64,000 bases of DNA. Source: Entomortierella parvispora E1425 (lineage: Eukaryota > Fungi > Mortierellomycota). Location: positions 1-64,000 of the forward strand of contig BQFW01000009.1 of the NCBI GenBank assembly GCA_020891255.1, written 5' to 3'. The notes below the pieces were generated by a model. It worked only from the letters and a program-made list of their open reading frames with translations. It made no database searches and was not told the DNA's origin. Of the stretch, positions 1-39,710 are shown piece by piece. A program made the translations under genes and the position numbers. Within the stretch, counting starts at the first letter, position 1. Every line of letters starts with the position of its first letter.

Positions 1-140
1 CTAAAAACCCTAAAAACCCTAAAAAACCCTAAAAAACCCTAAAACCCTAAAAACCCTAAAAAACCCTAAAAAACCCTAAAAAAACCCTAAAAAAACCCTA
101 AAAAACCCTAAAAAACCCTAAAAACCCTAAAAAACCCTAA
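1..140 (-). repeat. Telomeric repeat array, (CCCTA4-7)n on + strand = (T4-7AGGG)n; left chromosome end
   Basis: About 15 consecutive CCCT+A-run units from base 1, with A-runs of 4 to 7 (mostly 5-6). The C-rich strand at the 5' end is the orientation expected for a left telomere. Confidence 0.95.
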
Positions 141-284
141 TTTTAGGGTTTATACGCCCTAAACTCGCGTATTTGAACAGTTTAACGACGTCCTGGAGCG
201 TCTTTGCATCGTTTGCACCATTCAGATCGACTGTAAGATGCGTTTTTCTGTTATTTCCTAAAAAGGAAATGTGTCGATGTTCGG

Positions 285-370
285 TGGCTTAGGCTTCCTG
301 GACTATTAGGTGTTCCTTTTGTTTGCTTTTGCTCCCGGGTTCGAATCCGGGCTCGGCCTCGCTTTTCTGA
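285..370 (+). promoter_or_regulatory. Pol III B-box with weak A-box (degenerate tRNA-like / TFIIIC site)
   Basis: Perfect GGTTCGAATCC at 338-348 in a T-arm-like hairpin, TGGCTTAGG at 285, and TTTT shortly after. Acceptor and anticodon stems are poor, so this is not called a functional tRNA. Confidence 0.35.
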
Positions 371-1522
371 AGATATAAAAACAAGGTGTTTTTTTTCTCT
401 CGTAGAGATATAAGATACGGTGCATTAGAGAGCTCTCACCATAAGTATTCCACCTGGCCAAAAACATCGTCAATCCATAAGGTGGATCTTGAGCAATTGC
501 ATTTTTGAATCTCTTTTTTTGTGAAAATCGAACGCCTGTTTCTTGATATCTACGTTGACGACCAAGGTGATTTTCATATGGGGAGGTGCTAGTTTATCAG
601 AGGTCTATATTCATAAAGAAAAGTAGGCGAGTGACAAGGTGGTTCATGTGTAATTGCTGTTCTTATATTTCGTTTTTTTTTGGAAAAAAAATCTCTCTTA
701 AGATGGAGGAGTGAAGTGGTGACAGGAGCCGAGAGCTAGCCACTTAGACACTTCGTAGCTGCATTTCACGAAGTATGAGAAGGGGAAAGAGCGAAGTCTG
801 CAGTTTGGGGTGAGAGATCGACTGTTGGGCGCTTGAAAGGACAATCCACTAGCAACAGGAGACCGAGTGTGAACCGTGCACATGCTTGCTCTCTCGAGAC
901 TTCAGCGAGGAACTTGCAGCTCTCTCAAACAGTTTTTACTCTCCTCATCGTGCATGTAGACAAGAACATCAGCTCGTGCAGTTGTCACGTAGTTTTTTTA
1001 TACGCTAGACAAAAGTAGGAACAAGAGGGCAGAGACGAGGGCGCAAAACAAAAGAGACTGTGGTGACTTTGCCCTGGAACCGTCTCGTTCCTCGCTACTG
1101 CATGCTCTGCCTGAGGGCCAGAGAAATCTAGCAGTTGATGGTGGAGATGACTTACCTGAGAAGTGCGCGCCCCTGAATTAAGGACTTCATGTTTCCTGCA
1201 TGCCTCCCGTTTGTCGCATGTCCACTCTGGTTCATGGCTAGAATGAATGAGCTTTCTCCGTATGATTAGATGTAAAAGAAGTTGTTGACGACAAAGGGAA
1301 GGAGTAGCGAGCAACGCGTGAGAACGGAAGGAGAAAGCGAGAGGAAACGCCCAAGCTTGCGTCAACACGAAAAGAAGAGAGCGAAAACGAAGACAGGGGC
1401 ACAAAAGACCCGCTGATGTTTGATGTAAGAGTCGAGTTGGATGCATTGGGTCGGTTGAGACGGCGGCCGCAAAAGGTGAAAGATGTGAGCTCGATTCATT
1501 GGAGGAGAAGGATGCACGAGAT

Positions 1523-1918
1523 GAGATGCAACAGAGAAAAGAGATGCAGCAAAGAAGAGAGATGCAACAGAGAAGAGAGATGCAACAGAGAAGAGAGATG
1601 CAACAGAGAAGAGAGATGCAACAGAGAAGAGAGATGCAACAGAGAAGAGAGATGCAACAGAGAAGAGAGATGCAACAGAGAAGAGAGATGCAACAGAGAA
1701 GAGAGATGCAACAGAGAAGAGAGATGCAGCAAAGAAGAGAGATGCAACAGAGAAGAGAGATGCAACAGAGAAGAGAGATGCAACAGAGAAGAGAGATGCA
1801 ACAGAGAAGAGAGATGCAACAGAGAAGAGAGATGCAACAGAGAAGAGAGATGCAACAGAGAAGAGAGATGCAACAGAGAAGAGAGATGCAACAGAGAAGA
1901 GAGATGCAACAGAGAAGA
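1523..1918 (+). repeat. 18-bp minisatellite (GAGATGCAACAGAGAAGA) x22
   Basis: Near-perfect tandem copies. The variant GAGATGCAGCAAAGAAGA occurs at copies 2 and 12. Confidence 0.97.
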
Positions 1919-4131: not shown

Positions 4132-4282
4132 CAAGTCAAGGACAATCAATCGGGTCTCCATTAATCCGACCATGAACGAATGCTGTGGGTCTACCTCCAT
4201 GGCCTCTTCTTACGCGCTCACCCATCAATCGCACCCTACCACTGGGCATGTATCTGTGCTTCTTCTCTCAGCGATCCAGGGG
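4132..4282 (+). repeat. Dispersed non-coding repeat, copy A (copy B ~10650-11150, copy C ~34240-34600)
   Basis: Shared blocks such as CATTAATCCGACCATGAACGAATGCTG (A, B) and ATGTAT(C/T)TGTGCT (A, B, C). B and C also share ACATTTGGGTTAGGCAG. Confidence 0.8.
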
Positions 4283-4808: not shown

Positions 4809-7384
4809 TCATGCAGCTGTGACCAAATCGCCAAATAGCTTGTTTTGAAGCTCTTCAAGGCTAACATGCAGTACGTCCGGAAAGTCCTTGATTTTGCCAG
4901 TGTGATTGGGCTTGCCGGGTTTCCCATGGATATAGACAATCTGGAAGTCTTCCACAGCCCGAATATCCTCCACTAGTTGACCATCCTTGGATATTAGTTC
5001 CTTCCTACGGACGACGAACTTCCTCGTTACAGGGTTGATATCAGCCTCATGTTGGCCACCAAACGCACTGTCAAGATGCTTTTCAATCTGGTTTCTATGA
5101 TCAGACGTGCGAGTATTTGGGATAGTGGGACGTTCGAAAGCCTTCTCAATATTGGCGGAGTCGACATTGTGCGTGGCGAAGTCAGACAGGGATACTTGAA
5201 TAAACGTATGGCCACTTATGTAGTCAAATCGCGGATACCCTTTGAAACATCGTAGCAGTACGTTCTCACTGACGATGAAAGGAGGATCCTCAAGAAACTT
5301 GACCGAATTGGACCTTATGACGACAGGTACTTTTTGCTTGCCGGCAAGATCAGTTGCATCCAGAATTACTTTCGAATGTCGCACTAGGAAGGAGAAGAGA
5401 GCGTCCTCAAATTGTTCGCCTGTCGGATTACCGTCCGTGATAGCCTTCATCGTATCTCGAGGGAGTGGCATGGACCTGTAGATGTCGAGGAGAGCATCCT
5501 TGGCAGCCGGGCATAGGGTGCGGTATTCCGTACGAGCCGCTACTCGCATCCGATACACCAGCCCGAGGTCCATGAATTGATAGTCGAAGCCCCTGTTCTC
5601 AAAATCGAATTCGCCTTCTTTTCGAGGAAGAAAGATAGCTGCGAGAGCATGCCGATGCGAATGTTGCTGAACTTTATCGAGACCCCTGAAATATGTGTAC
5701 GCCTCCTGATAAAATGCCTGATGCCGTTGCTCTTGGAATTCTATCATTCGGGACAAAAGGTCGCTTTCGGTGAAGGTGACTGGATCGATTGCGGGTGATT
5801 GTTGTGAGTCCAATTGTTGTTCAGCGGTAGTCAAGCCTTTGCGGACATATACCGCCATGTTGACCAGCTCACGTGGGACGCGGTTTGTGATCTCCTTGAC
5901 TTTGTCCTTGATCGCTGGTCTTGATAGCATTGGGTCCATATGTAACAGCTTGTCGAAGACGGTATCGGACAGAGGGGTGACAAATTCCAGCCATTGCCAC
6001 ATGTCACTTCTGACGTATTGTCTTTCAAATTTTGCATGTGCCGTGCCAGTCAAGACCACCCGTGCCCCTCTACTGGTTTCGCGCCAAGCGGCAAGCTGCA
6101 TCAGTTGGTTGAGAATCACGTGCTTCTTGGGTATGGGCGGGTCTTGTTCAAAGAGTGCGCCATGCTCGTCAATAACCAAGAGAGTCTTTGTTTCCGGTTG
6201 TTGCAGTAGCTCGTGGAGGATGCTGTTAGCCGCACGGTTGAAGACTTCCTCTGGTTTCGGTCTCAATAATGTCATCTCGGCGAAGTTGGCGGAAGTCAAT
6301 ATGTCTTTGTTGAGTGGTAGAAATCGTGCACAGATAGCCTTGGCTATTCCCTGCGAGTCGTCCAAGGCCAACTCGTTTGCATCTGATACGTAGAGTAATA
6401 ACCATCCCTCAGCATATGCTTTGGCTGCAAGAAAGAGCGCAAGGTACGATTTGCCGACACCCATTGGACCTGACAGGATCCTTCTGATCGGCCGATCGCT
6501 ATTGCTGGAAAGCAGGCGCCACATTTCCACCATCTGCTCGGTGATAAAGAACGACAGTTTCTGGTAGCCTTCTCCGTAATGCTTGGGTCTTTGACCTATC
6601 GATGGTAACGTGATTTCCTGGCCGACTTCCAAATTGTTCAACGCCTGCTTGAAATCTTTGCGCGGCGCAGGTGCGAACTTTTCTTCTTTGAGCATGTGGA
6701 CCAACTCAGGCGGCAATTCCACAGATTGATCCTTGGCATCGTAATTCTTCCACTCACTAATCCTTGGCCGCTTTTGTGGATCCTCATGTTCGTGTTCGAT
6801 TCCCCTTTTGAGTTCTAGAATAGGAGAGGGTAATAGGGGTGAGTGAATGAATGCAGTAAACTGATGGCACTGAGACGTAATCATCAGACTCAGGCTCTAC
6901 GTGGGCTACTTCATGATTGACATACCTGACTGCGGCGAGCTAGGACGAGTTTTATCTAGGACATGGTGAAAAGGAAAGGTTAGAACAATAAGCTTACAAG
7001 GAAACAACTGAAATGACAAACAATCGTCACATGATGACCACAGCACGAGCAACAACTAGAGAAAGGCAAAGCTGCATTACCTGGTGGTTTTTGGACGAGG
7101 ATATAGGTACCATCTGCATCAAGTGCAAGACTGGAGACAAATTCCCGTGGATCAAGCTTCACTTTTTCGGGTAGCTTCTCGACATCAAGTATGCTCTTCT
7201 TGTCAACGTCATGGGGCTTGGTCCATTTGTAAAGGATGAGATCAATCGAGCGTGTTTCAAGAAGCAAAATCTTGTTGATGGCCCTCTTGAGGTCATCAAC
7301 GGTGGGATGAGGTTCGGTAGGAATGACCGAGAAGGATTCATCAAGGGCTCTTCCATCGTCGATGCACCAGTATGTTCGTTCCAT
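4809..7384 (-). CDS. CRN1: Crinkler-family effector (Ubl header + P-loop NTPase + REase-like), join(7384..7081,6955..6926,6814..4809), ~779 aa
   Basis: Header motifs YWCIDDG..TVDDLKRAI..LILYK..YILVQKPP. Two GT-AG phase-1 introns join the exons in frame. Walker A GPMGVGKS, Walker B LLVIDEH, and PRFDYI..FIQVS nuclease-like motif. Confidence 0.88.
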
Positions 7385-7564
7385 CGTAACGAGAGGTGAT
7401 GAAAGTGGAAAGTGGTGAAGAGTCCGCAGTCAGAAAAGCGCGACGTGCATGGTCAGTATGATGCACGCAGACCATGCGATTCTCATCGCTGTAATTTACT
7501 TCGGTGATATCATTCACGCGCCCATTGTGTGAAGGTCGGGCGCATGCAAAATGGAAAAAAAAAA

Positions 7565-10058
7565 CGAAAAATATATACGTAGCCACAGGAAGTCTGTCCG
7601 TCGCCACATCACACAAATGGTGGCTTAGCTGAAGTAATGTTTTCATTTGACCATCTCGTCTCGCTGGACACATGGCAACCCTGATGAACCACTTTGCTCA
7701 TTGAACTATCGAAACTAAGGAGATCCATTCACCAACCATCTGTCCATCTATGACAAGCTACTACTCTATGCATCTACTGCACGGAAGCGTTTGACATGCA
7801 CCCCCCGCATTCGGCTGCCAGCCTCAGGGTCAACCGTAATAGGCTCGTTGCTTCTAGCCTTGTGGAGGATAGTATGTGCACATGGAATTCCCATTACTCT
7901 AGTGAAGACATCGGTGCATGCAGGCAGAGTTGTATCTCTAGTTCGTTTAACCTGGGAATGGAATTCCTTCAGAGCAAACAAGGAAATCTTTTTGCGTATC
8001 AGAGCAAAGGCAAGGGATTCCCCGTAGGAAGGTGCGCATGTCATATCGTCCCTGGTTTTGAGCTCGATCTGCTTTGTCTGGTTGTTGATATAGTCCTCGT
8101 AGCATGTCAATGCATGAGTCATTGTGCCTCCACGCTGACCTATAAACTTTTTGTAGACTCCATGAGCGCCCTCGTTAATAGAAGTCGAGGAGTGCTTGAA
8201 GTGACGATGTTTGTTGGTCCATGCTTTAACAAAGCGGTGTTTGTGTTCGATCCATTGAGTGTTGATATAAATAAGCATGACCTTCAGCTTATTCTCCGGC
8301 AGGCCAGCATCCACCCCCAGACAAGCAAGATTTGCCTCAAATTCTTCCTCCGTCTCTGAGCAAATAAGAGCTTCGAAGGATGTCATAAACTTATCACGGA
8401 TTACGTCGTCGTTGGAAACCTGGCTAACCATCTTTTCGACGTTTTTCCTTACGTGCCATCCACAGAGGAGATTCATCGCATCTGGAAGCAGTTCGCTGAG
8501 TGCGTTCATCAGGGCCTTTTCCGTATCTGTGAGAATAATCTTGGTGTTGCGAACCTCTGGCGCGTAGTCAATGAGCCGCTGTATCGCCCACTCATAGTCA
8601 GATCCTGTTTCACTAGAAATGAACGCGCCTGCGACAGAAAATGTCTGGTTTGTCGCTGTAAATCCTACTACATGGAGAAAAGGCAGTCGCGCCGAATTGG
8701 TCTTGTACGTGCAGTCCATAGACAGAACTCTGGAGAATTGACGCAAGAGAGCTAGGGACGCAGGATGCATGATAAATAAGGCTTTGAGCGTTCCGTCGCC
8801 GTTGGATTTGATGTCGAATTTTATACCCTTCGACACCAAATCTTGGAGAGAGCTCTGTAGCGGGTTGAGTCCACCTCTGTGCTTCGCCTGATGACTGTGG
8901 ACAATATTCTGGACTTTCTTTGCTGACAAAATCCTTCCACCTCCTTGTGCCTGGAACATGGAGGCAACCTTCGTAGGGGAGTGAGTTTTGTGATACCAGT
9001 CCAGTATCGTCTTTTCGTCGTCTTCAGTAACCGTGTAGCCTTGGGGCATTGTATGCAAATCTCCGAGCGGATGGTTATGTATAAAGCGGCCTCCAGTGAC
9101 ACTGTACTGGCACACGTCCCTGTTGGCCTTGTCGCGAGACATATACAGGACAAATTTGCAATCCGTTAGGCGTGTGGTGTTGTGCTCGCGACTTACGATC
9201 TTGTTCCCATTCGCGTTGACCGAGTTGGCTCCTTCGGCTGGTGCTTTCTGGTTTGGGCGGTATTTACCAGCACGAGCACATCCGACACTAATTGTCTCAC
9301 CCCGGCTTTTACGGATTTTCTTGAGTGCAAACCCTTTGGAACGACAGAATTCCTGGTAATGATCAAAAGCATCCTTGAGGCTAGGGAACTTTCTCTCTTG
9401 CACAGAAGCGAAGTCGCTAGACACGTCCACTTCTACTTCATCGCTGTGGTGCAAAGGTAAGCAGGTAAGAGATATGGTTATGAAAATCCGTTCGATGTTT
9501 AATTAAGGTAGCACATACGGTTCCAGGACTGAATCTCTTCGCTGTGCAACTGGTTCGAGGGTTTGGGGTGAAGACAGCGAAGCGATGGACATTGAATTTG
9601 GAGGGCCACAAGATACAGCGGCAGTTTGAGGAGAGGGAGTGATGGGAGTGAGCAAAAGAGGAGTGCTATGGACGAAGTGGTCTTTTCTTCTGAACACATC
9701 CCTAGACCTCGGCAGCTTGTTTCGGAATCCAGTCCAAAACCCAACCCGGCAAAAAAGAGAAACGAAAAGGGGGCGGCGAAAGAGAACGGTTGACCCTGAG
9801 GCTGGCAGCCGAATGCGGGGGGTGCATGTCAAACGCTTCCGTGCAGTAGATGCATAGAGTAGTAGCTTGTCATAGATGGACAGATGGTTGGTGAATGGAT
9901 CTCCTTAGTTTCGATAGTTCAATGAGCAAAGTGGTTCATCAGGGTTGCCATGTGTCCAGCGAGACGAGATGGTCAAATGAAAACATTACTTCAGCTAAGC
10001 CACCATTTGTGTGATGTGGCGACGGACAGACTTCCTGTGGCTACGTATATATTTTTCG
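7565..10058 (-). mobile_element. Autonomous MULE/Mutator DNA transposon with 273-bp TIRs
   Basis: 7565-7837 is the reverse complement of 9786-10058 (no mismatch seen). A-runs flank both sides (A10 left, A9 right), compatible with a 9-bp TSD. Encloses an intact transposase. Confidence 0.93.
7766..9592 (-). CDS. MULE transposase (FAR1-like N-terminus, DDE core, SWIM-like), join(9592..9519,9443..7766), ~583 aa
   Basis: MDCTYKTN, ILTDTEKAL, LCGWHVRKN, STSINEGAH and GIPCAH motifs. A 75-nt GTATGT..CACAG intron restores an ATG-initiated frame. Confidence 0.9.
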
Positions 10059-10407
10059 AAAAAAAAAGTCAGTGTGGGTTGTCGTGAATTCGTGATCCCA
10101 TGCATCACGTGACTCCTACATGTTGAACCTCAGCTCTTCGACCTCTAGGTTCCTAGGCCGGCTCCCGGCCCATAGGCTCCCTTGGATGGCCCTCCGGCTC
10201 ATCAGATCCCTTGAAGCCGGCACCGCCAACGCAAACCTTCAGGATACTCCGGATCCAATGAATAAGTCCCTCATTATTACCTATAGAACATAGCAACATC
10301 TTTGTCCCGCGCTGAGTGCTCGCGCCTATAAAAGAGAGGCTTTCAGCCTCTCTGAATAAATCAGTTTTATCTTTCTTTTTATACAACTCATCTTCCTTCC
10401 CCTTTGC

Positions 10408-10641
10408 ATGCCAAGCTCTCCCATATCCTGGGCGTTCCTTTACATTGCTGTCCTGTTCCTTGCCTTCTTGCCTCAGATGCCAAATGTTGCTCTTCCAGTG
10501 ACTACTTCTTGCCCCAAGGCCAAGCCACACCGCTTGTCTCGCCCTTATTCTTACAGGGTCTGTGTCCAGCAGGACAAGTCAGCTTGGACATTTGTCAACG
10601 TGTTTTGTTTTTTTGTTCTTTTTGTTCCCCTCTGCTGCTGA
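10408..10641 (+). CDS. Possible small secreted peptide (3' structure uncertain)
   Basis: TATAAAA at 10327, ATG at 10408, and a hydrophobic signal-like N-terminus WAFLYIAVLFLAFL..VA/LPV. Confidence 0.3.
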   Translation: MPSSPISWAFLYIAVLFLAFLPQMPNVALPVTTSCPKAKPHRLSRPYSYRVCVQQDKSAWTFVNVFCFFVLFVPLCC

Positions 10642-11559
10642 AGCTGAAGGCAAGTCGAGGACAAGCGGGTTTCCATTAAATCATTAATCCGACCATGAAC
10701 GAATGCTGAATTTACCTCAATAGCCTCTTCCTGCGCGCTCAACCATCGATCGCACCCTACCATTAGACATGTATCTGTGCTGCTTCCCTCAGTGATCCAG
10801 GGATTGAAGAGAAGGATACACACGACAAGGATTACTGAGCAGGCTATCCTCTCATTAGGCAAGAAAGATAGAGGCTACGACTGAGAGGTGCATCAAGAGA
10901 ACAACAATTATTTCTTTCGAGTTTCGTGGAACTTCCTAACTCCGGCGCCTTCCAAGTTTTTCGAAAATATAACCGCAAAACAGGATCGTGTATTTTCCCT
11001 TCCTCGCTGTCCTTGCCCTACTTGTGGCACTCGCCTGCCTCAATATGAAACGATCTTGATTTAGGCAGTGGTGCTCCAACAGAGAAAGAGGCCACGAAAT
11101 CTAGAAGAGGACAAAATAGAGGAACATTTGGGTTAGGCAGTCTATCAACAGAAGACTCTAGTCAGTCAGCCAGGCGGGATGGTCTATCGATTGATATCTA
11201 TCGCGGTAGTCCATGAAGCGGGATTCAAGTATGTAGAGGGGAGCGAGGAAGACAAAGGTCGATGCTGAACCCACAAAAAAAAAAGCGTGCAGGTCCAGGC
11301 AGGCATGGTCTCTTTATTTCCCTGCAGAGTAGGAAATAACGACAGCAGCTCGCACCAAGCTGATGCTTCTGATGCCTCTTTCCGTCTCCCTCCAACACGC
11401 ATCGGAGGCCCACACATCGTCCTCTTGGTCCTCCTTCTTCCACGCCATTCCCGTCTCGACGCTGTTTCCTAGCTCCTACTTTTCTCGTCTCGAGCCTCCA
11501 TTCCAATTTCCCCCTTGCGGCGCTTGCGTTGTTTCTTCATCTCAAGAGACGCGCGCAAC

Positions 11560-13620
11560 TTGTTGCTTTGTTTCGTGGAAAGCCAGCCATCCCTGTCGAA
11601 ACGCACTCTGCCATTACAATTGGACCCTCAATGTTTCAATCATTTTGTCAAGAAAATCAACAGACTTGCAAGCCTCGAACACATATACCCACATATGCCC
11701 TTGCTCTGGTACCTCTCCAATCCTGATGCCAATCAGGGCTCAATCAATCAAAAAAAAAAAAAAAAAAAAACAACGCCCTTGGAGTGAAGACCAAGCTGAG
11801 CAAACAGACGAATGTTTCCCGAGAATCTCGACTCCATTGCCCAAGGACCACCATCAGGTAATGTCTGCATTTTTCGTTAATACTGCGAAAACTCTTGTAC
11901 ATGCGCTCATATATACTACTCTTGCTTCTAGGCGTAATGGTTGGGTATCAGTGCGTCAACGTAACCGTGGCAGCAGCGCTCAGTCCAATGTCCGTACTCC
12001 AGTATCTGCCCTTCTCTCTCCAAGGTCTCCCAGCTTCCCCTTCTATATACTCAGATGTATCTGGTAAGACAATTGCGCGTGTCCTTCTTAGGTGCACCTA
12101 TTACCGTTTACTCATCTCTTCAAAATAGTTGCATATTGACTACCATAGCAACAGGAGTTATTGCGTGGGGCGGGATCTCTGGGGCAGGATCTCTGAAGCA
12201 GGGAAGCGCGGACAAGTGATGGCTCAAGAGGCTCCATCGCCACTGTTTTAGGCTTGCCAAACTCTGCACATTCTAGAACTCAAGAAGAGGTGCGGATGAC
12301 ATCCTGACCAACTCTCTGTGGGACCATCAACGTCCCGAGATGCAGCCGAAAATATGAGGCCTTTACGTCAAAGCCAGTAAGAAGGATCCCGGATTGAACG
12401 ACATGCTCGCCGTTATACGTGCCTTGAAAGATACCCCAAACATCTGTTCAAAGAAGAACAGACAACAAATCGCAGACCGCGTGCGAGATTGGACTTTCGT
12501 ATTTGCGGGTTTTGATTCTGCAGTGCAGAGTGCGCATTCACCGGACTCTCGTGCGGAAGGCGGACATTCCTGCGCAGCACCAGCCTTCCTGTATGTGTTT
12601 GAGGGCCTTTTCAAGGATGTCAGACTGGCGGCTCACGATTTCCGATTCGTGGATGGAACCTCAATATCACCAACCCTGTGCGTGGACTTGCATGAAAGAG
12701 ACACTAGGCGACTTCCTAAATATGCACCACGGGCTGGCCCCGTTTATTTTGATTATGGATGATGTTCAAGTGCTGGGAAGGCTCCCGATGGACTGCCTCT
12801 CAACTTTGACCATACAGCCGTTCAGCCCATATTGGTTGAACTCCACCATTCCAGCTCGCGAGAAGGACCTAATGGCTCTTCATTAGGTACCAAATTTTCA
12901 GAAAATGAACTTGAGACTGCAAAGACCGCCAGTATGGTTTGCTGACTTTCTGGATGCACGAATAGCAAAATATGTCAGATCAGGATCGACCACAGGACTT
13001 TGGAGCAAGGGCTCGGCTCGCCAGTCTTCTTCATCAGAATGTGGTCGAAAGGCTCTATTGCGACTTGCGTCGCCTATTCCGCCAGTCGTATACATTTTGA
13101 AAACTTGCCTTGAAACAACGATCCGACAACGTGGATGAAGCGAGCGCCTCAACAACTTTGTAAGTTTGTATATCGAATGATAGCCATACATGACAAGGAA
13201 CTCATCCACGATGACCTCTGTGCCAAACTCGTCGGTCTCCCTCGACCGATTCCAATGTATGAAGGACATATTAGCTTTTATCATTCAGGGCGGGCTCTGG
13301 ACGTATAAGTAAGGGCTCCTGGAGTAGGTGGCGGTTGCATTTGACCTGATTCGAGGATGCATGGACTCAGGCTACTCAGTAAGTGATCCATGGGTGGTCA
13401 TACTCATGGTAGCAGACCTTTTTTTTTTTTTTTTTTGGAGAACGGATCCTGAGTACTTTCGGTTTGGCACCAGCGTTACATACAAGCAACATATCCTCAG
13501 GAAGCTGCTCGTAGGAGGAATCGGGAATTCATTGTACCTGCAAACTTGAAAGGGATACTCCGTGACAAGGTCGTCTAAAAGGACATTTCCAACGGCGCGA
13601 TGCATCTACAAGAGATGCCC
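11560..13620 (+). pseudogene. Degraded Crinkler gene (Ubl header remnant + NTPase remnant resembling CRN3)
   Basis: Header-like LLCFVESQ..LPLQLDP..LLWYLSNP..SIAQGPPSG ends at a CAG|GTAATG donor (11858). Downstream fragments FILIMDDVQVLG, SDPWVVILMVADLF..DP and NREFIVPANLK match CRN3 segments LLVVDEAQNLG, DEPFALRAAVNYF..DP and HQWEMAVQPSL. Multiple stops and frameshifts. Confidence 0.55.
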
Positions 13621-13779
13621 CTACGCCAATCAGACATCATTGGATATGGAAGCACAATACGGGACCCCAGGCACTAAGTCGTGAGCTTGGGACAGCTTCT
13701 GGATATTCATTTTTTCTGTCATGATTTCGGGAAAAATGGAGCTATTGCGCAGTTGCTCTCTCCTAAGGTATGTAGGTCT

Positions 13780-14810
13780 CATCACACGCGCGTCCCTGCT
13801 GGGTGAGCTGATTCTGAGTTAAGCAGCGGTACCATAATCATCAAAGGAAGGGATGGAGGTACGTTTGGGTGTTCGGTAGCAGCGATTCAGTAGAGGGAAC
13901 CTGCTGAAGGTGGATGAGTGCTGGGGCCATGTCTGCCTTGCCACCTTGCCCTTCCGCGGCCAGAAGACTATTCCACCAAATGTGCCAGCATTGCTCCACC
14001 AAGGTGCCTTGTGGACTTGAGTTGAGCTTTTGACTGCCAGGATCCTTTTTGGTGTGATCCGTCTTGCCGCCAAAAAAAATCTGTCAAGCCGAGCCGCTGC
14101 ATGTCGTTGCATGTTGTTGCATCTCGACTTCATCCCAGCCCTTCCGTTCAAGCTGATTCTCTTTGGTCGGCCCCCTCTCGCTCGCTCAGCCTAAAACCCA
14201 CTTGTGGATAGTGGTCCTTAGGCGTGGGGTGGACTTTGTTACCGTTGTTCCAGTCGTCTCCCATGGTTGCTGGCTGCATCCCATCCAGGAAGCCCACGCC
14301 TTGGCACTTCAGTTCCATTCTGGAACCCTGCGTCAAGTTGAACTGCTCGATCCCCTCCAATTCGTTCCAGGACTAGGGAGGGAGTCTCTTGCAACTCGCC
14401 CTCCTGTGGGTCTTGAGTCCAGGAGGCGAGCGGTGGCCCTGTTGCTACCTGCGTCCTATTCCGCCAAGCTCTTTTGCATGTCGCTTCCTGTCAACTTCCT
14501 GTTCCTGGGTTGGCCCACTATTAATTAGGCCTGTTGCAGGTGTGTGATGTATCCGAGATGAAGCCAATGTTGAATCGGATAGAAGTCGAATGGAATAAAA
14601 GTCGATGCCAGTCGACATATTATTATTTGAATATTTGAGGACACCTGCTGCTGTGGACTCAAGCTACAGGGCGTGAAAGCCATATTTTTTACATGCGCTT
14701 GAACCAATCTGTAGAAAACAACCGCTGTGGGAAATCCTCGACATGCGCTAAGAGCCAATAATCTGCAGAAAAGACCGCTGTGGGAGACCCTGGATGCACG
14801 GTGTGAAAGA
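13780..14810 (+). repeat. ~1-kb dispersed duplication, copy 1 (copy 2 at ~38746-39671)
   Basis: Long near-identical stretches, e.g. GGGTGAGCTGATTCTGAGTTAAGCAGCGGTACC, differing by substitutions and indels. No TSD or convincing protein found. Confidence 0.92.
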
Positions 14811-16221
14811 CAATTTTTTACATGCGCTAGAACCAATCTCTGGGTTCCTGATGGCATCAACAGATAGCTGCAACTGAGGACTATTATGAGCCAAGGTACC
14901 AGGGTCCCAGGACCTGACCTTGCCACCGAAAAAGTGCTCCAAATGACCCTAAAAACATCAGTCGACCCCACGCCACCACCTTTGCAGGGGTTTAGCACAG
15001 GGGCCCCCCTTTGATGTCATGACCGGATTGGGTTCCGGCTCAGTGTGGAGCAGGAGCAAAAGCTAAGGCCGGCTATATTTATCTGGGCTATATTTTGTCA
15101 CGGGCGCAGCTCGCACAGGAAAGTCGGAGTGTTGAAGGAGCTGTGTCGTCAATCCTCGTGCACAACAGACAAGGGACAAGTGACAGCGGCTGAGACCGAC
15201 AACATTTGCGACAAAAAGATGACAGATCCTTTTTTTTTTGGCGGTAGCCGCTGCAAAGTGCGCATCCCAAGATCAGATCACCCCTCCCCTGGAAGTGGAC
15301 ATGCACAACCTGTGGTGAAGCAGGCAGGGCTGCTACGAAGGGAGGAGAGGGAAGAGAGAGAAGAGGAGCACGGACAAAATCAGGACTCAGGGCAATCTGC
15401 AGCAGGAGGGAAAACAAGGACAGAGACATGGGCAAGGCCTGTTCTTTTTTCTTCTTCCTCGACCGTTCCATCTCATCTCCTGCCTCGCTCTTCCATCTCC
15501 TGCCTCGCTCTTCCATCTTGCAACCTGCATCCATGCCATGCGCTTGCCTTCCATTGCCCTTGCGCCGTTCATCTTGTCGTCTCCATCTTTCTCGACTCTT
15601 ACATCCTCTCCGTCGTAAAATATCTGTTTTTTTGCCCTTGTTCAATTTCATGGGCTGGTTCATCGGGCCAATAATGGACTGCAGGCGCGACGACGATTGG
15701 CCGACTTGGTCACGTGACTTTATCTCAATAAGTTAGTCTATTATTATTGTGACTACCAGGTAGAAATGACCAAGAGAAAATTTATTAATATGGCGCTCAG
15801 TTGTTTTTGACAAGGCAGGAAGCAGATTTGACCTGAGAATACTTACATAGTAAAACTGATTTAATAATTTTCAAGTTCCTCTGCATGGGGCGTACGAACT
15901 CAATGTTATTCATAGTAGACTTATATTCTTTGAGCCCGATGTTTGTGTGAGCCTCAAAATGTTTTTCAACTGCAAAATAAATGAGAAACCTGCAGTGGAG
16001 CCATATAAAATTGGAAATCGCTCTGTAACATTACAAAAAATGATCAAATCCTGGCACAAAATCGTTTTTCTCGTATAAAAAGAGGCAAATCTGCCTATGA
16101 ACTATACCCTCTTTTTTGCCCCATTCTTGCTCCAAACTACCCCTTACACCTGTCCAACTGCCTTAAACCCCCCCCCCCCCCCCCTTCCCCCTTACTGATC
16201 AGTGTGTGACCAGTTACTTCA

Positions 16222-19416: not shown

Positions 19417-19527
19417 TGCAATAGGAGTATCGAGGGTGGAGTGGAGACAAGAAGTGAGTTTTATTATATTGCAAGTTTCTAGCTTTTGTAGGTACACATC
19501 GCGTGATGTCACCGTATTCCTGTTACA
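19417..19527 (-). mobile_element. 111-bp LTR in inverted orientation
   Basis: Reverse complement of 21937-22047 with 1 mismatch; TG...CA termini. Confidence 0.9.
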
Positions 19528-22047
19528 TAACGCTCCTGCTTCGTTCTCCAATATGATGTTGCGAGTGCTCGATCCAGTCTTGGACAAATGGGTTGTCGTG
19601 TATCTCGACGATCTGTTGATCTACTCCAAGACAAAGAAAGAACACCTGCAGCATCTCCGAAGCGTCCTGGCTCTCCTCCGCAAGAATGGTCTGTACGCGA
19701 AATTGAGCAAGTGCTCCTTCATGCAAGACGAAACTGAATTTTTGGGCCACACCATCACCAAGGACGGGATCAAAACATCGGCCGGGCTCAGCAAAGCCAT
19801 CAGTGACTGGCCCACCCCCAAGAGCACAAAGGACGTCCAGCAATTTTTGGGGCTTGCGCAATTTTATCAACAGTACGTATCGGGCTTTGCAGGGATTGCC
19901 CTCCCTCTCTCTTCCCTCCTCGCCAACAACACTCCCTTCAAATGGACCGACGAACAACAATCTGCATTCCTTCAGCTCAAACGCGCCATCTGCTCCGCCC
20001 CCGTCCTCCGCATCTTCGACCCTGATCTCTCACCTTTGTCGAAACAGATGCATCCGGTTTCGCCATCGGTGCAGTGCTGCTGCAGACTGACCGGGAAGGG
20101 AATACCCATCCCATCGCATTCACTTCCAGGAAAAATGCAGTCAGCTGAGCGGAACTACCCTGTCCATGAGCAGGAACTGTTGGCTGTCATCCATGCGCTC
20201 CGCACTTGGCGCTACTACCTCGATGGAACCAAGTTCAGCGTCCACACCGACCACGCCACCCTCCGCCACTTCCCCCACACAGCCCAAACTCACTCGTCGA
20301 CAGGCTCGCTGGATGGAGTTGCTTCAGGAATACGACTTTGACTTCAAGTACAAGCGAGGAGTTGACAACATCGTCCCAGACGCTCTCTCCCGACGACCGG
20401 ACTACCGCGAGCCTGACCCTGTTGAGCTATACAACCTCAGCGTCTCCCTGTCCCCGGACGTCCGTGACCAGCTTGTCCAGGACTACAACGACGATCCTCG
20501 ACTTGGACCCATCTACAAGGATTGCCTGGATGGGAAGGTTGCCAATGGATATTCATTCCAGAACAACCTCCTCTACTTTACCCGACGTGGAGCAACCACC
20601 CTGGCCATCCCTCGGCACTCCCCGATCCGCCTCACTCTCTTGCACGACGCTCACGACTCTGCCACTGCTGGACACTTTGGTTTTCAAAAGACTTACGACA
20701 ACCTGCGCCGTTTCGTATATTGGCCCCACATCGCCAAGGATACCCAGCAGTATGTAGCAACCTGCGAGAAGTGTCAAAGGAACAAGGACTCACAGGATCG
20801 ACCAGCTGGACTCTTGCAACCGCTACCCATTCCTTCGCAACGTTGGGAGGTAGTCACCATGGACTTCATCGGCCCTCTTCCGCCCACAGCTAGAAATTTT
20901 GACGCCATCACAGTGTTTGTCGACAAGCTGACCAAGCAAGCTCACTTCGTCCCCAGTACTACCTCTGCCACAGCCGTCGACGTCGCCCACCAGTTTTTTG
21001 ACAACATCTTCAAGCTGCATGGCACACCAACATCCATCATCTCGGACCGCGACACTCGATTCACTAGTAGATTCTGGCAAGAGTTGCACAGGCTAATGGA
21101 TGTCAAACTTGCACTGTCAACCGCCTACCACCCACAGACGGATGGGCAGACAGAGGTTATGAACAAGACGCTGAAGACTATGTTGAGAGCGTTTATTGAC
21201 AACAAGCAGTCTAACTGGGACCAGCTCCTTCCGTCACTGGAATTCGCCTATAACAACGCTGTCAATGCATCCACGGGATACTCGCCGTTCTTCCTCAACT
21301 CTGGCCAGCACCCTCGTCTCCCCACCGCTCTCCTCGGTAAACCCAGCAGCTCAGTCCCCACTGTCGATACCTTCCTGACTGAGCAGGCGACCACCCTTGC
21401 CCTGGCCCAGGATGCTCTGCAGCGTGCTCAGGATCATCAGGAGCAACAGGCAAACAAGCGACGACGGGATCACAAGTACAAGGTTGGCGATAAGGTCCTG
21501 CTGCGTGCCACCAATATCACCATCCCTGCCGACAGTATCAGACCAGCCGATAAACTTCGACCTCAATTCCTTGGCCCGTTCACACTTTTGGAGCAACACT
21601 CACCTGTCACCTTCCGCGTCGAGCTGCCACCATTCTACAAAATCCATGACGTCTTCCACGTTGATACCTTTCGACCCTATTTGCCGTCCCCGGAGTCACT
21701 CGGCATTCGAGCTCCTGCCCCCGTGGATCCCACTGTAATTGACGGCGAAGAGGAGTATGAAGTGGACGAAATTTTAAAGTACCGCTTCTACCGCAGACAA
21801 CACCAGTTCCTAGTGTCATTCAAAGGCTACGGCAGAGAAGCTGACGAATGGCTCCCAGTAAGCAACTTGGACAACTGCATGGACTTGGTCACAACCTTCA
21901 AAGAGCAGCACGGTATCATTTTTTAAAAGGGGAAGGTGTAACAGGAATACGGTGACATCACGCGATGTGTACCTACAAAAGCTAGAAACTTGCAATATAA
22001 TAAAACTCACTTCTTATCTCCACTCCACCCTCGATACTCCTATTGCA
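19528..22047 (+). mobile_element. 3' half of a Ty3/Gypsy chromovirus: RT (from NAPASF), RNase H, integrase, chromodomain, PPT and 3' LTR
   Basis: YLDDLLIYS, ETDASGFAIGAVL, ELLAVIHAL, HDAHDS..GH..CEKC, MDFIGPL, SDRDTRF, DGQTEVMN, LGPF and EYEVDEIL chromodomain. PPT AAAAGGGGAAGG at 21925-21936, then LTR TGTAAC..TTGCA. Three apparent single-base frameshifts (~20026, ~20130, ~20275). Confidence 0.95.
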
Positions 22048-24099: not shown

Positions 24100-24530
24100 T
24101 GTTCGGGAATGGCGGTGAAGAGGGCAAGGTGCAGGAAAAAGTCCGCGCACAGAGCGCGTTCATCAGAGCACCTTCAAACTTAAGGGGTGTATTTTTTGTG
24201 ATCTTTCAGTAGGCTCGACCCAGCCCTCTCTCCTCACCACGTGACCGCCGCAGGTGGTCATGTCCTCGTAGAGGGGCTGGCGGCAAATGTGGCCCTTTAC
24301 ATAGGATGAATATAAAAGGAAGGTGCTTAAGGGTTGTCATTAAGGGTTTGTCGATCTGGGTCACATCGCTGTCGGTTGTCGAATCACAACGCCTCCCAAC
24401 GATTCACCTTGTCACATTCCTTCCCCACATGCCATCCCATTCCTGACATGCCTTCCGTTTTCTTCTGTCTTTCCTTTGTCATGTGTCAAAATTTAGTCAG
24501 AATATATTACTTGATGTGAAAACCCTCCTT

Positions 24531-25412
24531 CTAGTTGTTTTTGTTCCTCTTCCCGAATTGCAGCCCACACTCGGTCGGCCTGTAGTACTTCTGGTCGAGG
24601 CGTGCTCGTCTCAATATCTGCGAAGCTGGGGGGCCACTAGAGCCGCTGGAGCCAACAGAGGGCCTAGAAGGACTTCGTGCTTGATGATAGGGACTGGTCT
24701 CCCTAGGGCTGGGCCCCCTTGGATCAGATTTCATTTTCGAATTGTACTGGTGCTGTGCAAGAGAACTGGAAGTAGAGCTTGAAATCCACCTCTCGGTTTT
24801 CTCATGAATGCTAACAAAACCTGATAACCTCTCGTGCATTTGATAGGTCATGTTGTCCAAAGATTGCAGTCGACGCGAAAAATCCGCAGTATTTGAATCC
24901 ACTTTCTCGTTGAGCTTCCTGAAGAGATCCACGACTAGATGTTGTGTCTTTGATTCTTGATCCGTAGGTGGTCTGTACTGCTCACTAGTGCCAAGTGTGG
25001 CGGAAGTAGAAGGGGGCGATGAAACAGCCAGAGTTGAAGTAGGTGACTACAAATGCCACAGGAGACAAAAATAAAAGACATGGCGTTAAAATCTACATTA
25101 CAGTATATGATGCGAACTCGCATTAATCCATTTGTCATCAACACGACGTACCGGTTCTGAAGCTGGCTTGGGCAACAGTGTGGCGGAGTAAAACTTTGGT
25201 ACCACATGGATATTTTTCTCCGATAACTCTTGTATCAACAGGGGCTTGATGAGAGTACATGCCTTTTGGAGCTTGCGCCCTTCAATGTGGTCCTGTAGAG
25301 TTTGAGATCTCGAGAAATCCCTCCCGCAGACGCATACGTGTGCGAAGAATTGAATCTTAACATCACCCTTGGGAATGGTGATAGTAACACTGAATTCAAT
25401 GGGCTTGGGCAT
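24531..25412 (-). CDS. Third gene inside the Academ element: zinc-finger-like + coiled-coil protein, join(25412..25152,25046..24531), ~258 aa
   Basis: CVCGRDFSRSQTLQDHIEGRKLQKAC motif. A phase-0 GTACGT..GTAG intron joins it in frame to the helical exon DLFRKLNEKVDSNTADFSRRLQSLD. Confidence 0.55.
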
Positions 25413-25679
25413 GATGTTTTTGCGCTTGATGAAAGATGGAGGTGAAGTGATGCTGTCTGCGGTGTGGAGAAGAGAATTGATGAGGAAAATAGAGAAAAAT
25501 GAGAGCGTATCATCCCCTTTAAGTATGTTTTTGCAATTGGGAATGCGATCAAGTATCGAAGGCACACAAAGCGGTCCACGGCGCATTGTTGGGCTTGATG
25601 TCAGTGCGCGAACGAGAATAGTGCTGGCGCGTATGCAAAGAGTGCGTGATCAAAGAGGCACTGACACATGAACAATTGT

Positions 25680-25985
25680 CGCGTATGCAAACAGTACGCA
25701 ACAAAAATCGCATGGGAATAAAGGGGGGCCAGTGAGTCCTGGCGCGTATGCAAACAGTACGCAACAAAATCGCATGGGAATAAAGGGGGGCCAGTGAGTC
25801 CTGGCGCGTATGCAAACAGTACGCAACAAAATCACATGGGAACAAAGGGAGGACAGTGAGTCCTGGCGCGTATGCAAACAGTACGCAACAAAAATCACAT
25901 GGGAACAAAGGGGGGACAGTGAGTCCTGGCGCGTATGCAAACAGTACGCAACAAAATCATATGGGAACAAAGGGGGACAGTGCGT
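25680..25985 (+). repeat. Tandem array of five ~62-bp units inside the Academ element
   Basis: Unit GGCGCGTATGCAAACAGTACGCAACAAAATCRCATGGGAAYAAAGGGGGRCAGTGAGTCCT, with a partial sixth copy at ~25625. Confidence 0.95.
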
Positions 25986-26554
25986 GTGAAAACAGTGCCC
26001 GATCAAAGGGGTGCTGGACAGAGCTGATTTCATTCATTCAGAATGAAGGTTGAGACGAGGAACAATGCGAACACCAAGGCGAAGAACAAGGTGAAGGACA
26101 AAGCGAAGGACGAAGCGAAGAACAAGGCGAAGAACAGGGCGAAGAACAAAACGAGGACAAAGCGAAGAGGATATGAAAGGAAGAGGTGGGCGGCGCCCGA
26201 GACGAAAAAGAGAAGTCCCTGGACACGGAGTGCAGGCCGCACGACTCAACTTCTTGTCGATGGTCGCACGTCCACTCGAACACGAACCTTTCTCCCTCCC
26301 ATGTCGTCCCTTGTCTTCCTATGCCGTCCCTTGTCTTTCTATGCCGTCTCTTGTCTTCCTATGCCGTCCCTTGTCTTCCCAGGCCGTCCTGTGCCATACG
26401 CTATCTTCCCATGCCTTCCCGTAACGTCCGCTCTCATTTCATGTCTTCCATGAAGCGCTCTCCTCCTTTCATCGTTTTCTCAAGCTTCGAACTTCACTCC
26501 ATCGACATTCTGCCTTACGCAAACACCTGTTGTTGAGCCCTCGTCTTTCGCAAA

Positions 26555-28914: not shown

Positions 28915-29098
28915 ACTTACTGCTCTTGCCTCCGAGTAGAGGAGCAGGAAACTAATTAATGTTTATTGCGGGATTGCAGTGCTGAAGAGCTCTTCATACG
29001 AGGGCATAGTCAGTATGAACCGTGGGTCAGGGTACATTATGTTGGTTATGGTACGTTGGTATCATGGGCTGACTACCCCATCTAATTGCTGATCTATG

Positions 29099-39671: not shown

Positions 39672-39710
39672 ACCCAAATTTTATTCACATTTCCCTCCTT
39701 CAGTCTCTTG

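Follow-up and report, generated by a model that had tools for sequence, protein, structure and literature searches.

Recombination behind the header is the described behaviour of the Crinkler (CRN) effectors of Phytophthora infestans and P. sojae, in which exchange occurs after the HVLVxxP header motif and "fragment recombination" is described as well (PMC3726527). In P. sojae, fragments of 40-303 bp are shared by otherwise unrelated CRN genes, and the breakpoint is set at the coding motif, introns not being mentioned in that paper (PMC3726527). The genes described here belong to Entomortierella parvispora, a soil fungus carrying an endobacterium (PMC8759367). As in the oomycetes, a Crinkler header (PF20147) is followed by variable C-terminal modules, the breakpoint lies just past the header-end motif, short fragments are shared by unrelated genes, and similar headers occur with unrelated C-termini, as well as the converse. 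Unlike the oomycete genes, the junction in Mortierellaceae contains a phase-1 intron, often with a phase 1-1 linker exon, the mapped breakpoints are intronic, and the organism is a soil saprotroph of the Mortierellaceae and not a plant pathogen.

Exon shuffling of symmetric phase 1-1 modules (Gilbert; Patthy) is known mainly from animal extracellular proteins and, to our knowledge, is generally considered rare in fungi. The present case shares with it the same-phase introns that bound the modules, the in-frame chimeras produced by intronic recombination, and a small symmetric exon that may be present or absent between modules; it differs in that the events are recent (82-97% identity), have breakpoints mapped within a few bases, and took place within one fungal gene family, partly at chromosome ends. 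Subtelomeric contingency families with ectopic recombination, such as Plasmodium var, trypanosome VSG and the yeast subtelomeric families, offer a further parallel, since near-telomere paralogs there also exchange segments and yield mosaic genes. Here, by contrast, exchange takes place at intronic points and involves whole domains, not segments of genes, and we know of no role of it in antigenic or host-related variation.

We consider it probable that the likeness among three E. parvispora genes, namely CRN1, CRN3 and EMPS_09986, was left by Crinkler paralogs recombining ectopically, more than once, at breakpoints in the junction introns.

Crinkler genes of the window and their junctions

The window (the whole stretch of DNA analysed, 64,000 nucleotides) contains CRN1, CRN2 and CRN3, whose parts are as follows.

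4809-6814 (-): CRN1 exon 3, C-terminal P-loop NTPase domain, "T1" toxin (Pfam DAP3, AAA_22, AAA)
6815-6925 (-): CRN1 intron 2, 111 nt, phase 1; 6879-6925 common with EMPS_09986 and, to about 6873, with CRN3; 6815-6872 private
6926-6955 (-): CRN1 micro-exon, 30 nt, phase 1-1, included in annotated P0001; remnant of the 3' end of the Mortierellaceae linker exon
6956-7080 (-): CRN1 intron 1, 125 nt, phase 1; 7024-7080 is the H1-linked core and 6992-7057 the 66-nt block
7081-7384 (-): CRN1 exon 1, divergent Crinkler header "H1", ending in phase 1; its translation is P0001 residues 1-101
31330-32978 (+): CRN2 whole, with header exon 31330-31828, phase-1 intron, micro-exon 31934-31963 and C-terminal exon from 32077
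57978-58302 (+): CRN3 exon 1, classical Crinkler header "H3", ending in phase 1 (PF20147, E 3.6e-18)
58303-58355 (+): CRN3 intron 1, 5' part, native H3-type intron, 83-85% identical to L053 6479-6530 and 11879-11930
58356-58481 (+): CRN3 intron 1, 3' part, H1-type intron from 3 nt past the donor site, then the cassette block
58482-58508 (+): CRN3 micro-exon, 27 nt, phase 1-1, predicted from frame arithmetic; linker-exon remnant
58509-58615 (+): CRN3 intron 2; 58509 to about 58562 common with CRN1 and EMPS_09986, about 58547 to 58615 with Podila CRN3-type genes
58616-59865 (+): CRN3 exon 3, toxin "T3", ending at the first in-frame stop, with weak P-loop signals

CRN1 corresponds to EMPS_06684 of E. 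parvispora, whose annotated product P0001 (779 aa) is exactly the sum of exon 1 (7384-7081), micro-exon (6955-6926) and exon 3 (6814-4809). Its header matches Pfam Crinkler weakly (E 3e-3), and a profile of four H1 headers aligns over its full length with classical Podila headers (hhalign probability 97.2%, E 2.9e-11); the CRN2 header matches PF20147 with E 6e-7. In CRN1-3 and 60-odd relatives the header ends in the motif [HY]-[IV]-[ILV]-V-x-x-P, followed by unrelated C-terminal domains. The toxin exon of CRN1 is 73% identical to Podila verticillata P0002, a protein with another header type, and that of CRN3 shows 73% identity with P. verticillata P0102 across 411 residues. The initial annotation had described these exons as NTPase-REase toxins; Pfam recovered the P-loop NTPase signals and gave no confirmation of the nuclease. 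CRN3 stays in frame under the same predicted model of header, micro-exon and toxin as CRN1, and its splicing, including the 27-nt micro-exon, is proposed from the reading frame and from resemblance to annotated paralogs. Two open reading frames, 59964-61196 and 61319-62167, lie downstream of CRN3 exon 3.

A phase-1 intron was found at the same header-end position in every one of the 11 E. parvispora Crinkler genes examined, and the junction intron was in phase 1 at 20 of the 24 header ends scored in genomes and metagenomes, the two counts overlapping by six E. parvispora genes. In addition to the phase, these introns have a conserved start. At eight loci, drawn from genomes and metagenomes, an 84-nt phase 1-1 linker exon separates the header from toxins of two families, and in protein P0012 a linker-like stretch is joined to a third toxin family. 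Parts of this linker exon can be aligned with the CRN1 and CRN3 micro-exons, the latter showing an internal deletion relative to the Podila linker exons (L005 and L006), and all three exons (84, 30 and 27 nt) are symmetric, of phase 1-1. The linker exon is old and widespread across Mortierellaceae, and the micro-exon of the tract is its remnant. The 30-nt micro-exon of CRN2 is unrelated to those of CRN1 and CRN3.

The tract shared by CRN1, CRN3 and EMPS_09986

CRN1 and CRN3 have in common a tract of about 205 nt (6873-7077, minus strand, and 58356-58562, plus strand), aligned by gapped BLAST at 83% over 215 columns. The coordinates and similarities given by the initial annotation were as described: its 66-nt block (6992-7057, minus, and 58382-58447, plus) differs by one base, and the exons that flank the tract do not align. 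A second block (6893-6945, minus, and 58489-58541, plus; 53 nt, 91%) is joined with the first by the gapped alignment. The 66-nt block has two matches in the window and none in 100 shuffles, and 62 of its 63 aligned bases are identical in the CRN1-CRN3 alignment.

A third copy, 93% identical, was found in EMPS_09986 (locus L051), fused to a third toxin domain. Our survey covered the window and the fetched loci, including 11 E. parvispora Crinkler genes, and the copy number given refers to these. All three copies are inside junction introns of Crinkler genes, and the genes concerned have headers of two types and three C-terminal domains unrelated to one another. The tract was not present in 8 of the 11 E. 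parvispora Crinkler genes, CRN2 among those without it, nor in the Podila counterparts of either toxin type; further copies were found neither in the remaining 60 kb of the window nor in the fetched loci, and an exact 24-mer of the tract had no match in the metagenome collection. A 25-mer of the block likewise had no exact match in a collection of bacterial and archaeal genomes, a comparison that carries no information for a fungal sequence.

Introner-like elements occur in fungi and algae, and also leave near-identical intron sequence in different genes. A small introner-like or MITE-like mobile insertion that lands in introns would fit a window rich in transposons and the arrangement in EMPS_09986, where about 40 nt of H1 intron are directly duplicated on either side of a core of about 165 nt. 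However, only one of the three copies has that duplication, whose length far exceeds that of ordinary target-site duplications, terminal inverted repeats are absent, and no copies turned up elsewhere in the window, the fetched loci or, by exact 24-mer, the metagenome collection. Unlike introner-like elements, the introns occupy ancestral, family-wide positions, no more than three copies came to light, and a degenerate exon makes up part of the tract; indeed the tract is partly homologous to the Podila linker exon and intron 2 at the same position. Within the window and the loci covered, we regard a mobile insertion as very improbable.

The tract does not stand as an element of its own. Its first 57 nt or so come from an intron that four genes with H1 headers have in common. 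The opening 57 nt of CRN1 intron 1 show 98% identity with the one junction intron of EMPS_10695 (L050), and the intron start is 87% identical over 48 nt to the single junction intron of EMPS_10660 (L052); similarity to both ceases after the H1 core. This core is found in the four genes and again within intron 2 of EMPS_09986, each copy with another 3' tail and another toxin. Further on, positions 114-166 of the cassette are 74% identical to Podila minutissima L006 1238-1290, where the linker exon gives way to intron 2, and the 3' part of the tract resembles intron 2 of Podila CRN3-type genes. In CRN3, intron 2 is 79% identical to L005 6521-6589 over 70 nt (E 1.7e-8), and in CRN1 there is a weak likeness (about 12 of 15 bases) between the last 15 nt or so of intron 2 and the 3' terminus of the lone intron in Podila CRN1-type genes. 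The tract itself is pieced together from header-linked intron, degenerate linker exon and toxin-linked intron.

CRN3 intron 1 had been called a mosaic, which we found to be the case: its first 45-53 nt match CRN2 (77%, 47 columns), the CRN2 intron resembling CRN3 in the first 45 nt or so only, and better the two L053 paralogs (83-85%). In CRN3, 53 nt of its own header-type intron are thus fused ahead of CRN1-type intron sequence. CRN1 intron 1, which had been read as a CRN3 intron with a deletion, is rather the regular intron of its header type, as seen in four genes. We also considered, on the basis of Podila, that the tract was native to CRN3 and copied into CRN1, and rejected it because three more H1 genes show the 5' part to be H1-linked.

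Breakpoints in the junction introns

Five tracts of homology between paralogs end inside junction introns (at 7024, 6879, 58355/58356, about 6873 and about 58555-58562), and additional joints of H1 core and tail are present in the introns of L050, L051 and L052. Counted from the intron start, the homology ends come after 53-57 nt in intron 1 or after 47 nt in intron 2, and not within the coding header-end motif. CRN1 and EMPS_10695 have about 5 kb of upstream sequence, the header and 57 nt of intron in common at 96-97% (96.5% over 7563-7024), with nothing beyond. With EMPS_09986, CRN1 shares the rest of the junction at about 94%; the overall identity is 88% over 7529-6879, after which the toxin exons are unrelated within colinear chromosome ends. 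The CRN1 toxin exon is common to neither gene. Homology of CRN1 to CRN3 ends at 6873, and to EMPS_09986 at 6879. At informative sites CRN1 sides with EMPS_10695 alone in 62 cases and with EMPS_09986 alone in 8. No such site falls between 7131 and 7024, an interval made up of the final 51 nt of the exon plus the 57 nt that open the intron, and it is here that the switch to the EMPS_09986-like junction must lie.

CRN3 is made of three parts. The first comprises its own promoter, header and 53 nt of intron: 57810-58355 (168 nt upstream, exon 1 and 53 nt of intron) is 87% identical to the two tandem paralogs of L053. The second is a segment of intron and micro-exon from a gene with a CRN1-type header; the homology to L053, which runs to 58355, abuts the homology to CRN1 and EMPS_09986, which starts exactly at 58356. 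The third is its own toxin-linked intron end and toxin exon. The tract is composite, with transfer in both directions; the direction and order of events are read from three to five sequences.

Across 63 Mortierellaceae proteins, header similarity and toxin similarity also disagree strongly: in 30 pairs the headers reach 60% identity or more and the toxins are unrelated, and the reverse was found in 72 pairs. The earlier proposal that headers and toxins are swapped at the junction, with breakpoints in the junction introns and the frame kept, is supported by these data.

The second half of that proposal, a conserved homology cassette maintained by selection as crossover substrate and acting as a built-in diversification device, fared worse. 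In its favour are the location of all three copies at the header-toxin junction with differing partners, the age and wide distribution of the linker exon and its flanks, and the phase 1 and conserved start that the junction introns have in common. Against this, the tract is itself composite and is missing from most E. parvispora Crinkler genes (8 of 11) and from the Podila counterparts, whereas genes without it recombined equally well in the plain H1 intron. Moreover, the joints at the tract edges sit where homology ends; at several of them, by reading, only 2-5 nt are in common, which argues for illegitimate joining rather than crossover within a homology block. Selection for evolvability is also unneeded, as a survivor effect suffices: only in-frame intron joints give working genes. 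We therefore think it unlikely that a dedicated cassette is kept at these junctions.

Ectopic recombination, the reading we prefer, is best described as exon shuffling among paralogs at chromosome ends, with a short gene conversion later on. Repair of a break on a paralogous template, or unequal exchange involving two chromosome ends, would join any header to any toxin exon, and the chimeras would stay in frame because the junction introns share phase 1. Homology for some events may have been supplied by the last part of the header exon together with the GTAATGCA start of the intron, by the header-linked intron core and by linker-exon remnants, while the remaining joints would have formed with only a few bases in common. 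Break-induced replication, gene conversion, unequal crossover and template switching are alike candidate routes.

The uneven conservation of the tract deserves separate consideration. Between CRN1 and CRN3, mismatches amount to 1 of 63 in the block and 19 of 108 in the rest of the tract (Fisher p = 0.001), whereas between CRN1 and EMPS_09986 they are uniform along it (p = 0.71). The near identity of the block is best accounted for by a more recent short gene conversion, in which some 90 nt of intron 1 would have passed between a CRN1-like gene and CRN3. Alternatively, selection on the 66-nt block could yield the same pattern, if the block were constrained by a function of its own, as a splicing enhancer of the micro-exon or as an intron-borne RNA. 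The block is 95-98% identical in all three pairs, with 73% in the next 50 nt or so when CRN3 is compared with the other two; the block is T- and G-rich and is placed 36-50 nt upstream of the micro-exon, and RNAalifold can pair it with a block in intron 2, looping out the micro-exon. Nevertheless, the block is missing from Podila genes that splice the linker exon at the same site, its first half is present in genes without a micro-exon (L050 and L052), and constraint leaves the H1-type intron sequence in an H3-header gene unexplained. The intronic RNA that the initial annotation had offered as an alternative received no backing either: an Rfam search with permissive thresholds returned chance-level hits only (best E 1.2, far below thresholds), folding of single sequences and of the alignment gave no significant signal against shuffled sequence (z = +1.65 and +0.60 with the tract taken whole, and between +0.58 and -2.1 with parts of it), and none of the 49 pairs predicted by RNAalifold was compensatory, with an unfavourable covariation term, in an alignment of three near-identical sequences that has little power. 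By eye, we rejected the block as a C/D-box snoRNA, for which the box-like motif differs between copies, and as extra tiny exons, where the alternative model of 10 + 14-nt exons lacked support. Overall, we give little credence to constraint on the block. Near-identical intron blocks in divergent paralogs, in this sense, need not mean a functional RNA.

Chromosome ends and the wider setting

Modular recombination of Crinklers was known in oomycetes at a coding motif; in this early-diverging fungus the same junction is intronic. Ectopic recombination in introns explains how headers recombine in frame with enzymatic domains, and constitutes a rare, datable case of fungal exon shuffling, with several exchanges mapped within a few bases, all of them intronic. 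More speculatively, and we hold this to be unlikely, the Mortierellaceae junction may have become a standing shuffling interface, built of a family-wide phase-1 intron with its conserved start, an optional symmetric linker exon and a placement at chromosome ends with paralogous repair templates, with turnover of headers and toxins between strains far above ordinary gene evolution. If true, it would be a eukaryotic, intron-based counterpart of the cassette exchange of bacterial polymorphic toxins. Equally speculative is an RNA-templated or splicing-linked step in the transfer into CRN3, conceivable in view of the H1-derived segment beginning 3 nt after the H1 donor site. The shuffling can be tested with existing data: a 19-contig assembly, an RNA-seq library (DRA013164) and dozens of Mortierellaceae genomes.

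The chromosome-end setting of CRN1 includes the following features.

1-140 (no strand): telomere repeat
7565-10058 (no strand): Mutator-like transposon with perfect 273-nt inverted ends and a MULE transposase domain (E 2.6e-22)
10556-15029 (no strand): upstream part of a recent duplication of the CRN1 and EMPS_10695 loci, which together with 7024-7563 is 94-97% identical to L050 1419-6364

CRN1 is the terminal gene, ends 4.7 kb from the telomere repeat and is transcribed towards the telomere. The chromosome end that carries EMPS_09986 is colinear with that of CRN1, and of the three genes with the cassette, two occupy the terminal position on colinear chromosome ends. The duplication shared by CRN1 and EMPS_10695 stops at nt 57 of intron 1; the stretch 7564-10555 is missing from L050. 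The Mutator-like transposon is inserted 180 nt upstream of the CRN1 start codon and splits this duplication.

Gene models and the shared tract

The annotated product of the Crinkler gene CRN1 (EMPS_06684; P0001, 779 aa) is an exact match to a three-exon model. Gene calls of GCA_020891255.1 came from AUGUSTUS and RNA-seq-derived transcript sequences, and the E. parvispora genome was obtained by Nanopore and Illumina sequencing in 19 contigs (PMC8759367).

Exons of CRN1 in the annotated product
7384-7081, minus strand, exon 1
6955-6926, minus strand, micro-exon
6814-4809, minus strand, exon 3

The header exons of CRN1, CRN2 and CRN3 all end in phase 1, and the exon after each micro-exon starts in phase 1; the micro-exon is of 30 nt in CRN1 and CRN2 and of 27 nt in the predicted splice model of CRN3. 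By Pfam, the C-terminal exons give P-loop NTPase signals, and the Crinkler header scores E 3.6e-18 in CRN3 and E 6e-7 in CRN2, with a weak hit in CRN1 (E 3e-3). CRN1 carries a divergent form of this header (CRN1-type, H1): a profile from four such headers matches the classical Podila ones along their whole length (hhalign 97.2%, E 2.9e-11).

As stated in the initial annotation, a 66-nt block of CRN1 (6992-7057, minus) recurs in CRN3 (58382-58447, plus) with 1 mismatch in 66, and the exons flanking the tract cannot be aligned between both genes. The block pattern has two sites in the window and none in 100 shuffles. A second block (6893-6945 and 58489-58541) shows 91% identity over 53 nt, and gapped BLAST joins both into one tract, 7077-6873 against 58356-58562, with 83% identity over 215 columns. 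Using the P0001 H1 header region as query, we found three further E. parvispora H1-header genes, whose C-terminal P-loop domains all differ.

Further H1-header genes, with header-region identity to CRN1
EMPS_10695 (L050), 870 aa, 84%
EMPS_09986 (L051), 695 aa, 75%
EMPS_10660 (L052), 464 aa, 69%

EMPS_09986 contains the complete tract (93% identity to CRN1 over 207 columns) and its annotated product includes the tract micro-exon. The paralogs CRN1, CRN3 and EMPS_09986, with unrelated toxin exons, carry the tract, hence at least three copies, a lower bound from the window and the fetched loci. It is missing from the E. parvispora Crinkler genes EMPS_10587 (L003, with a CRN3-type toxin, T3) and EMPS_09804 (L004, related to the CRN1-type toxin, T1), and it is not a general feature of Crinkler junctions. 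An exact-word scan for the block gave no matches in the metagenome collection; the prokaryote genome collection, also with no matches, is uninformative for fungal sequence.

EMPS_10695 and EMPS_10660 have one junction intron each, whose first 57 nt (98%) and 48 nt (87%), respectively, match CRN1 intron 1, and in both a private tail begins past the branch-site motif CGACTAATG. In intron 2 of EMPS_09986 the tract ends at GTCTGATGAT, followed by a second copy of the H1 intron core and its own tail. Intron sequence accompanying the H1 header thus makes up the first half of the 66-nt block. Podila genes with a CRN1-type toxin (L001, L002) have a single plain intron and no micro-exon. Those with a CRN3-type toxin (L005, L006) follow the order header, intron, linker exon, intron, toxin; CRN3 aligns with their linker exon and with intron 2 in its 3' half, and the 66-nt block has no counterpart anywhere in these two loci.

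Such a tract could be an RNA gene, and an intronic ncRNA had been proposed earlier as an alternative. The evidence argues against it: Rfam matches are at chance level, shuffled sequence folds at least as well as the tract (whole-tract z = +1.65 and +0.60; z for parts, +0.58 to -2.1), and the alignment fold, a comparison of little power, has no compensatory pair. Moreover, Podila genes splice the linker exon at the same position without the block, and the block's first half is present in genes lacking the micro-exon. A mobile element would be another explanation, against which it counts that inverted ends are absent, that neither the window nor the fetched loci hold a further copy, and that a flanking duplication of ~40 nt occurs in one copy only.

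Breakpoints within junction introns

Ends of homology were mapped by BLAST, locus against locus. CRN1 and EMPS_10695 share 96.5% identity over 7563-7024, a stretch that starts 180 nt 5' of the start codon and reaches intron 1 nt 57, and are unrelated beyond 7024. The duplication extends upstream to ~15029 at 94-97%, broken only by a ~3-kb insertion (7564-10555) that holds a Mutator-like transposon. With EMPS_09986, CRN1 shares 88% over 7529-6879 and nothing thereafter, toxin exon included. Each of these two is the terminal gene, ~5 kb from the telomere and transcribed toward it, and their chromosome ends are colinear (window 4-1657 against L051 13526-11846, 87%, and more blocks in the same order); therefore, the toxin exon was replaced inside a common frame. 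Where L050 and L051 can be told apart, CRN1 has the L050 state at 62 sites and the L051 state at 8. The interval 7131-7024 holds none of these sites, and CRN1 therefore passes from L050-like to L051-like sequence where all three are identical, which fits a homologous exchange within this interval.

CRN3 matches two tandem genes with CRN3-type headers (H3) in L053 (87% over 57810-58355, up to intron nt 53). At 58356 begins an H1 intron, entered 3 nt past its donor site, and with it the tract shared with CRN1 and EMPS_09986, which reaches ~58555-58562; the rest of the intron is similar to those of Podila CRN3-type genes (79% over 70 nt). Thus CRN3 is a three-part mosaic with both joints intronic. 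These matches bear out the mosaic intron first proposed for CRN3, and what had been taken for a deletion in CRN1 between two ATGCA copies is really a fusion of H3 and H1 introns in CRN3. By our reading of the alignments, only 2-5 common bases are found at the other joints, namely H3-to-H1 intron in CRN3 and tract-to-H1 core in EMPS_09986. The order and direction of the exchanges are deduced from few sequences.

Likeness between CRN1 and EMPS_09986 is even along the tract (93-98%; Fisher p = 0.71), whereas that of CRN3 to both is uneven.

Identity of CRN3 to CRN1 and EMPS_09986 along the tract
H1 core, 93-95%
Block after the H1 core, 94-100%
Acceptor site region and first half of the micro-exon, 73%
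End of the micro-exon and start of intron 2, 89%

CRN1 and CRN3 differ at 1/63 positions in the 66-nt block and at 19/108 elsewhere in the tract (Fisher p = 0.001). We read this as an old common junction, ~90 nt of which a recent conversion would have overwritten; the uneven likeness could alternatively reflect selection on the 66-nt block. The tract might also be a dedicated recombination cassette, but most of the paralogs read lack it, the tract is itself composite, and plain H1 introns recombined too. Of the proposal that an intronic cassette shuffles headers and toxins, the joints within junction introns (the CRN3 mosaic and CRN1) are borne out and the dedicated cassette is not supported.

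Intron phase and linker exon across the family

A metagenome scan with Podila-type headers gave 43 loci. Among 24 scored header ends from genomes, metagenomes and the window (L004 read by hand), 20 have a phase-1 intron, which starts nine codons past the first residue of the header-end motif, usually with GTAATG followed by C or T. Reading by hand places six more E. parvispora genes in phase 1 as well, bringing this species to 11/11, a count that shares some genes with the 24. A widespread Mortierellaceae linker exon, which encodes a Ser/Thr/Pro-rich stretch with repeated S/T-P sites, separates header from toxin in L005, L006, L008, L010, L012/L015, L019 and L021, joined to two toxin families; protein P0012 has a linker-like stretch before a third. 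The exon is always phase 1-1, measures 84 nt in three loci (e.g. L006 1196-1279), and its presence varies inside one toxin family. To our knowledge, no linker exon has been described in Mortierellaceae Crinklers.

The CRN1 micro-exon matches the last 30 nt of the linker and the start of the next intron (74% over 53 nt), that of CRN3 combines a middle piece and the end with an internal deletion, and by reading, other E. parvispora Crinkler genes retain different remnants. The 30-nt micro-exon of CRN2 (31934-31963) encodes an acidic/basic stretch similar to the residues with which the T1-type toxin exon opens, as does the 33-nt micro-exon of EMPS_09804; therefore, junction micro-exons have at least two separate origins. 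Header and toxin similarities are incongruent, as had been anticipated: by pairwise identity among 63 two-part proteins, headers of at least 60% identity go with unrelated toxins in 30 pairs, and toxins of at least 60% identity with headers below 40% in 72.

In Phytophthora sojae, the header-end motif is where CRN breakpoints are described, and CRN genes that are otherwise unrelated have 78 short fragments of 40-303 bp in common (PMC3726527); the word 'intron' is absent from that paper. We found no work pairing Crinkler with intron phase; the two that pair it with exon shuffling deal, by their titles, with subjects other than CRN gene structure. The E. parvispora junctions reflect the same process in a fungal branch of the family, where it works by way of introns of one phase and a linker exon that is symmetric.

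Chromosome-end repeats, transposons and neighbouring loci

The window opens with a telomere repeat of CCCTAAAAA(A) type (1-140) and contains a long array of 18-nt tandem repeats (1415-2515); its telomere-adjacent sequence also ends contig BQFW01000013.1 (L051). Direct repeats of ~1 kb (13780-14818 and 38746-39682; 90-97% identity), also present 5' of EMPS_10695 (L050 1665-2695), form one dispersed chromosome-end family with 4192-4281, 10713-10802 and 34282-34371. Repeats of telomere-adjacent type lie 3' of EMPS_10695 (L050 11628-13915; 82% to window 112-739), ~55 kb from the contig end, and may be an internalised former chromosome end.

The Mutator-like transposon (7565-10058), whose 273-nt inverted ends match perfectly and whose MULE transposase ORF (562 aa; 7766-9454, minus) looks intact, lies 180 nt 5' of the CRN1 start codon and is missing from the 97%-identical paralogous L050. 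A 6.9-kb segment between 259-nt inverted repeats (24210-31095; 99%), ending 235 nt 5' of the CRN2 start codon, holds DUF6589 (27295-28914) and DEAD/Helicase_C (29099-30721) ORFs and may be a large DNA transposon. An ORF with Ty3-type integrase and chromodomain (20166-21926) is flanked by 111-nt inverted repeats (19417-22047), and an inverted partial copy, given as 75-80% diverged, lies at 47879-48512.

The tandem H3-header genes of L053 (6001-7523 and 11401-13139) are near-identical, with a C-terminal domain resembling a restriction-endonuclease fold by motif only and a 9-nt micro-exon that is the counterpart of the linker exon's first codons. Directly 5' of EMPS_10587, L003 carries a 1313-aa gene (4893-9457) with a Cas12f1-like TNB domain (Fanzor/TnpB-like).
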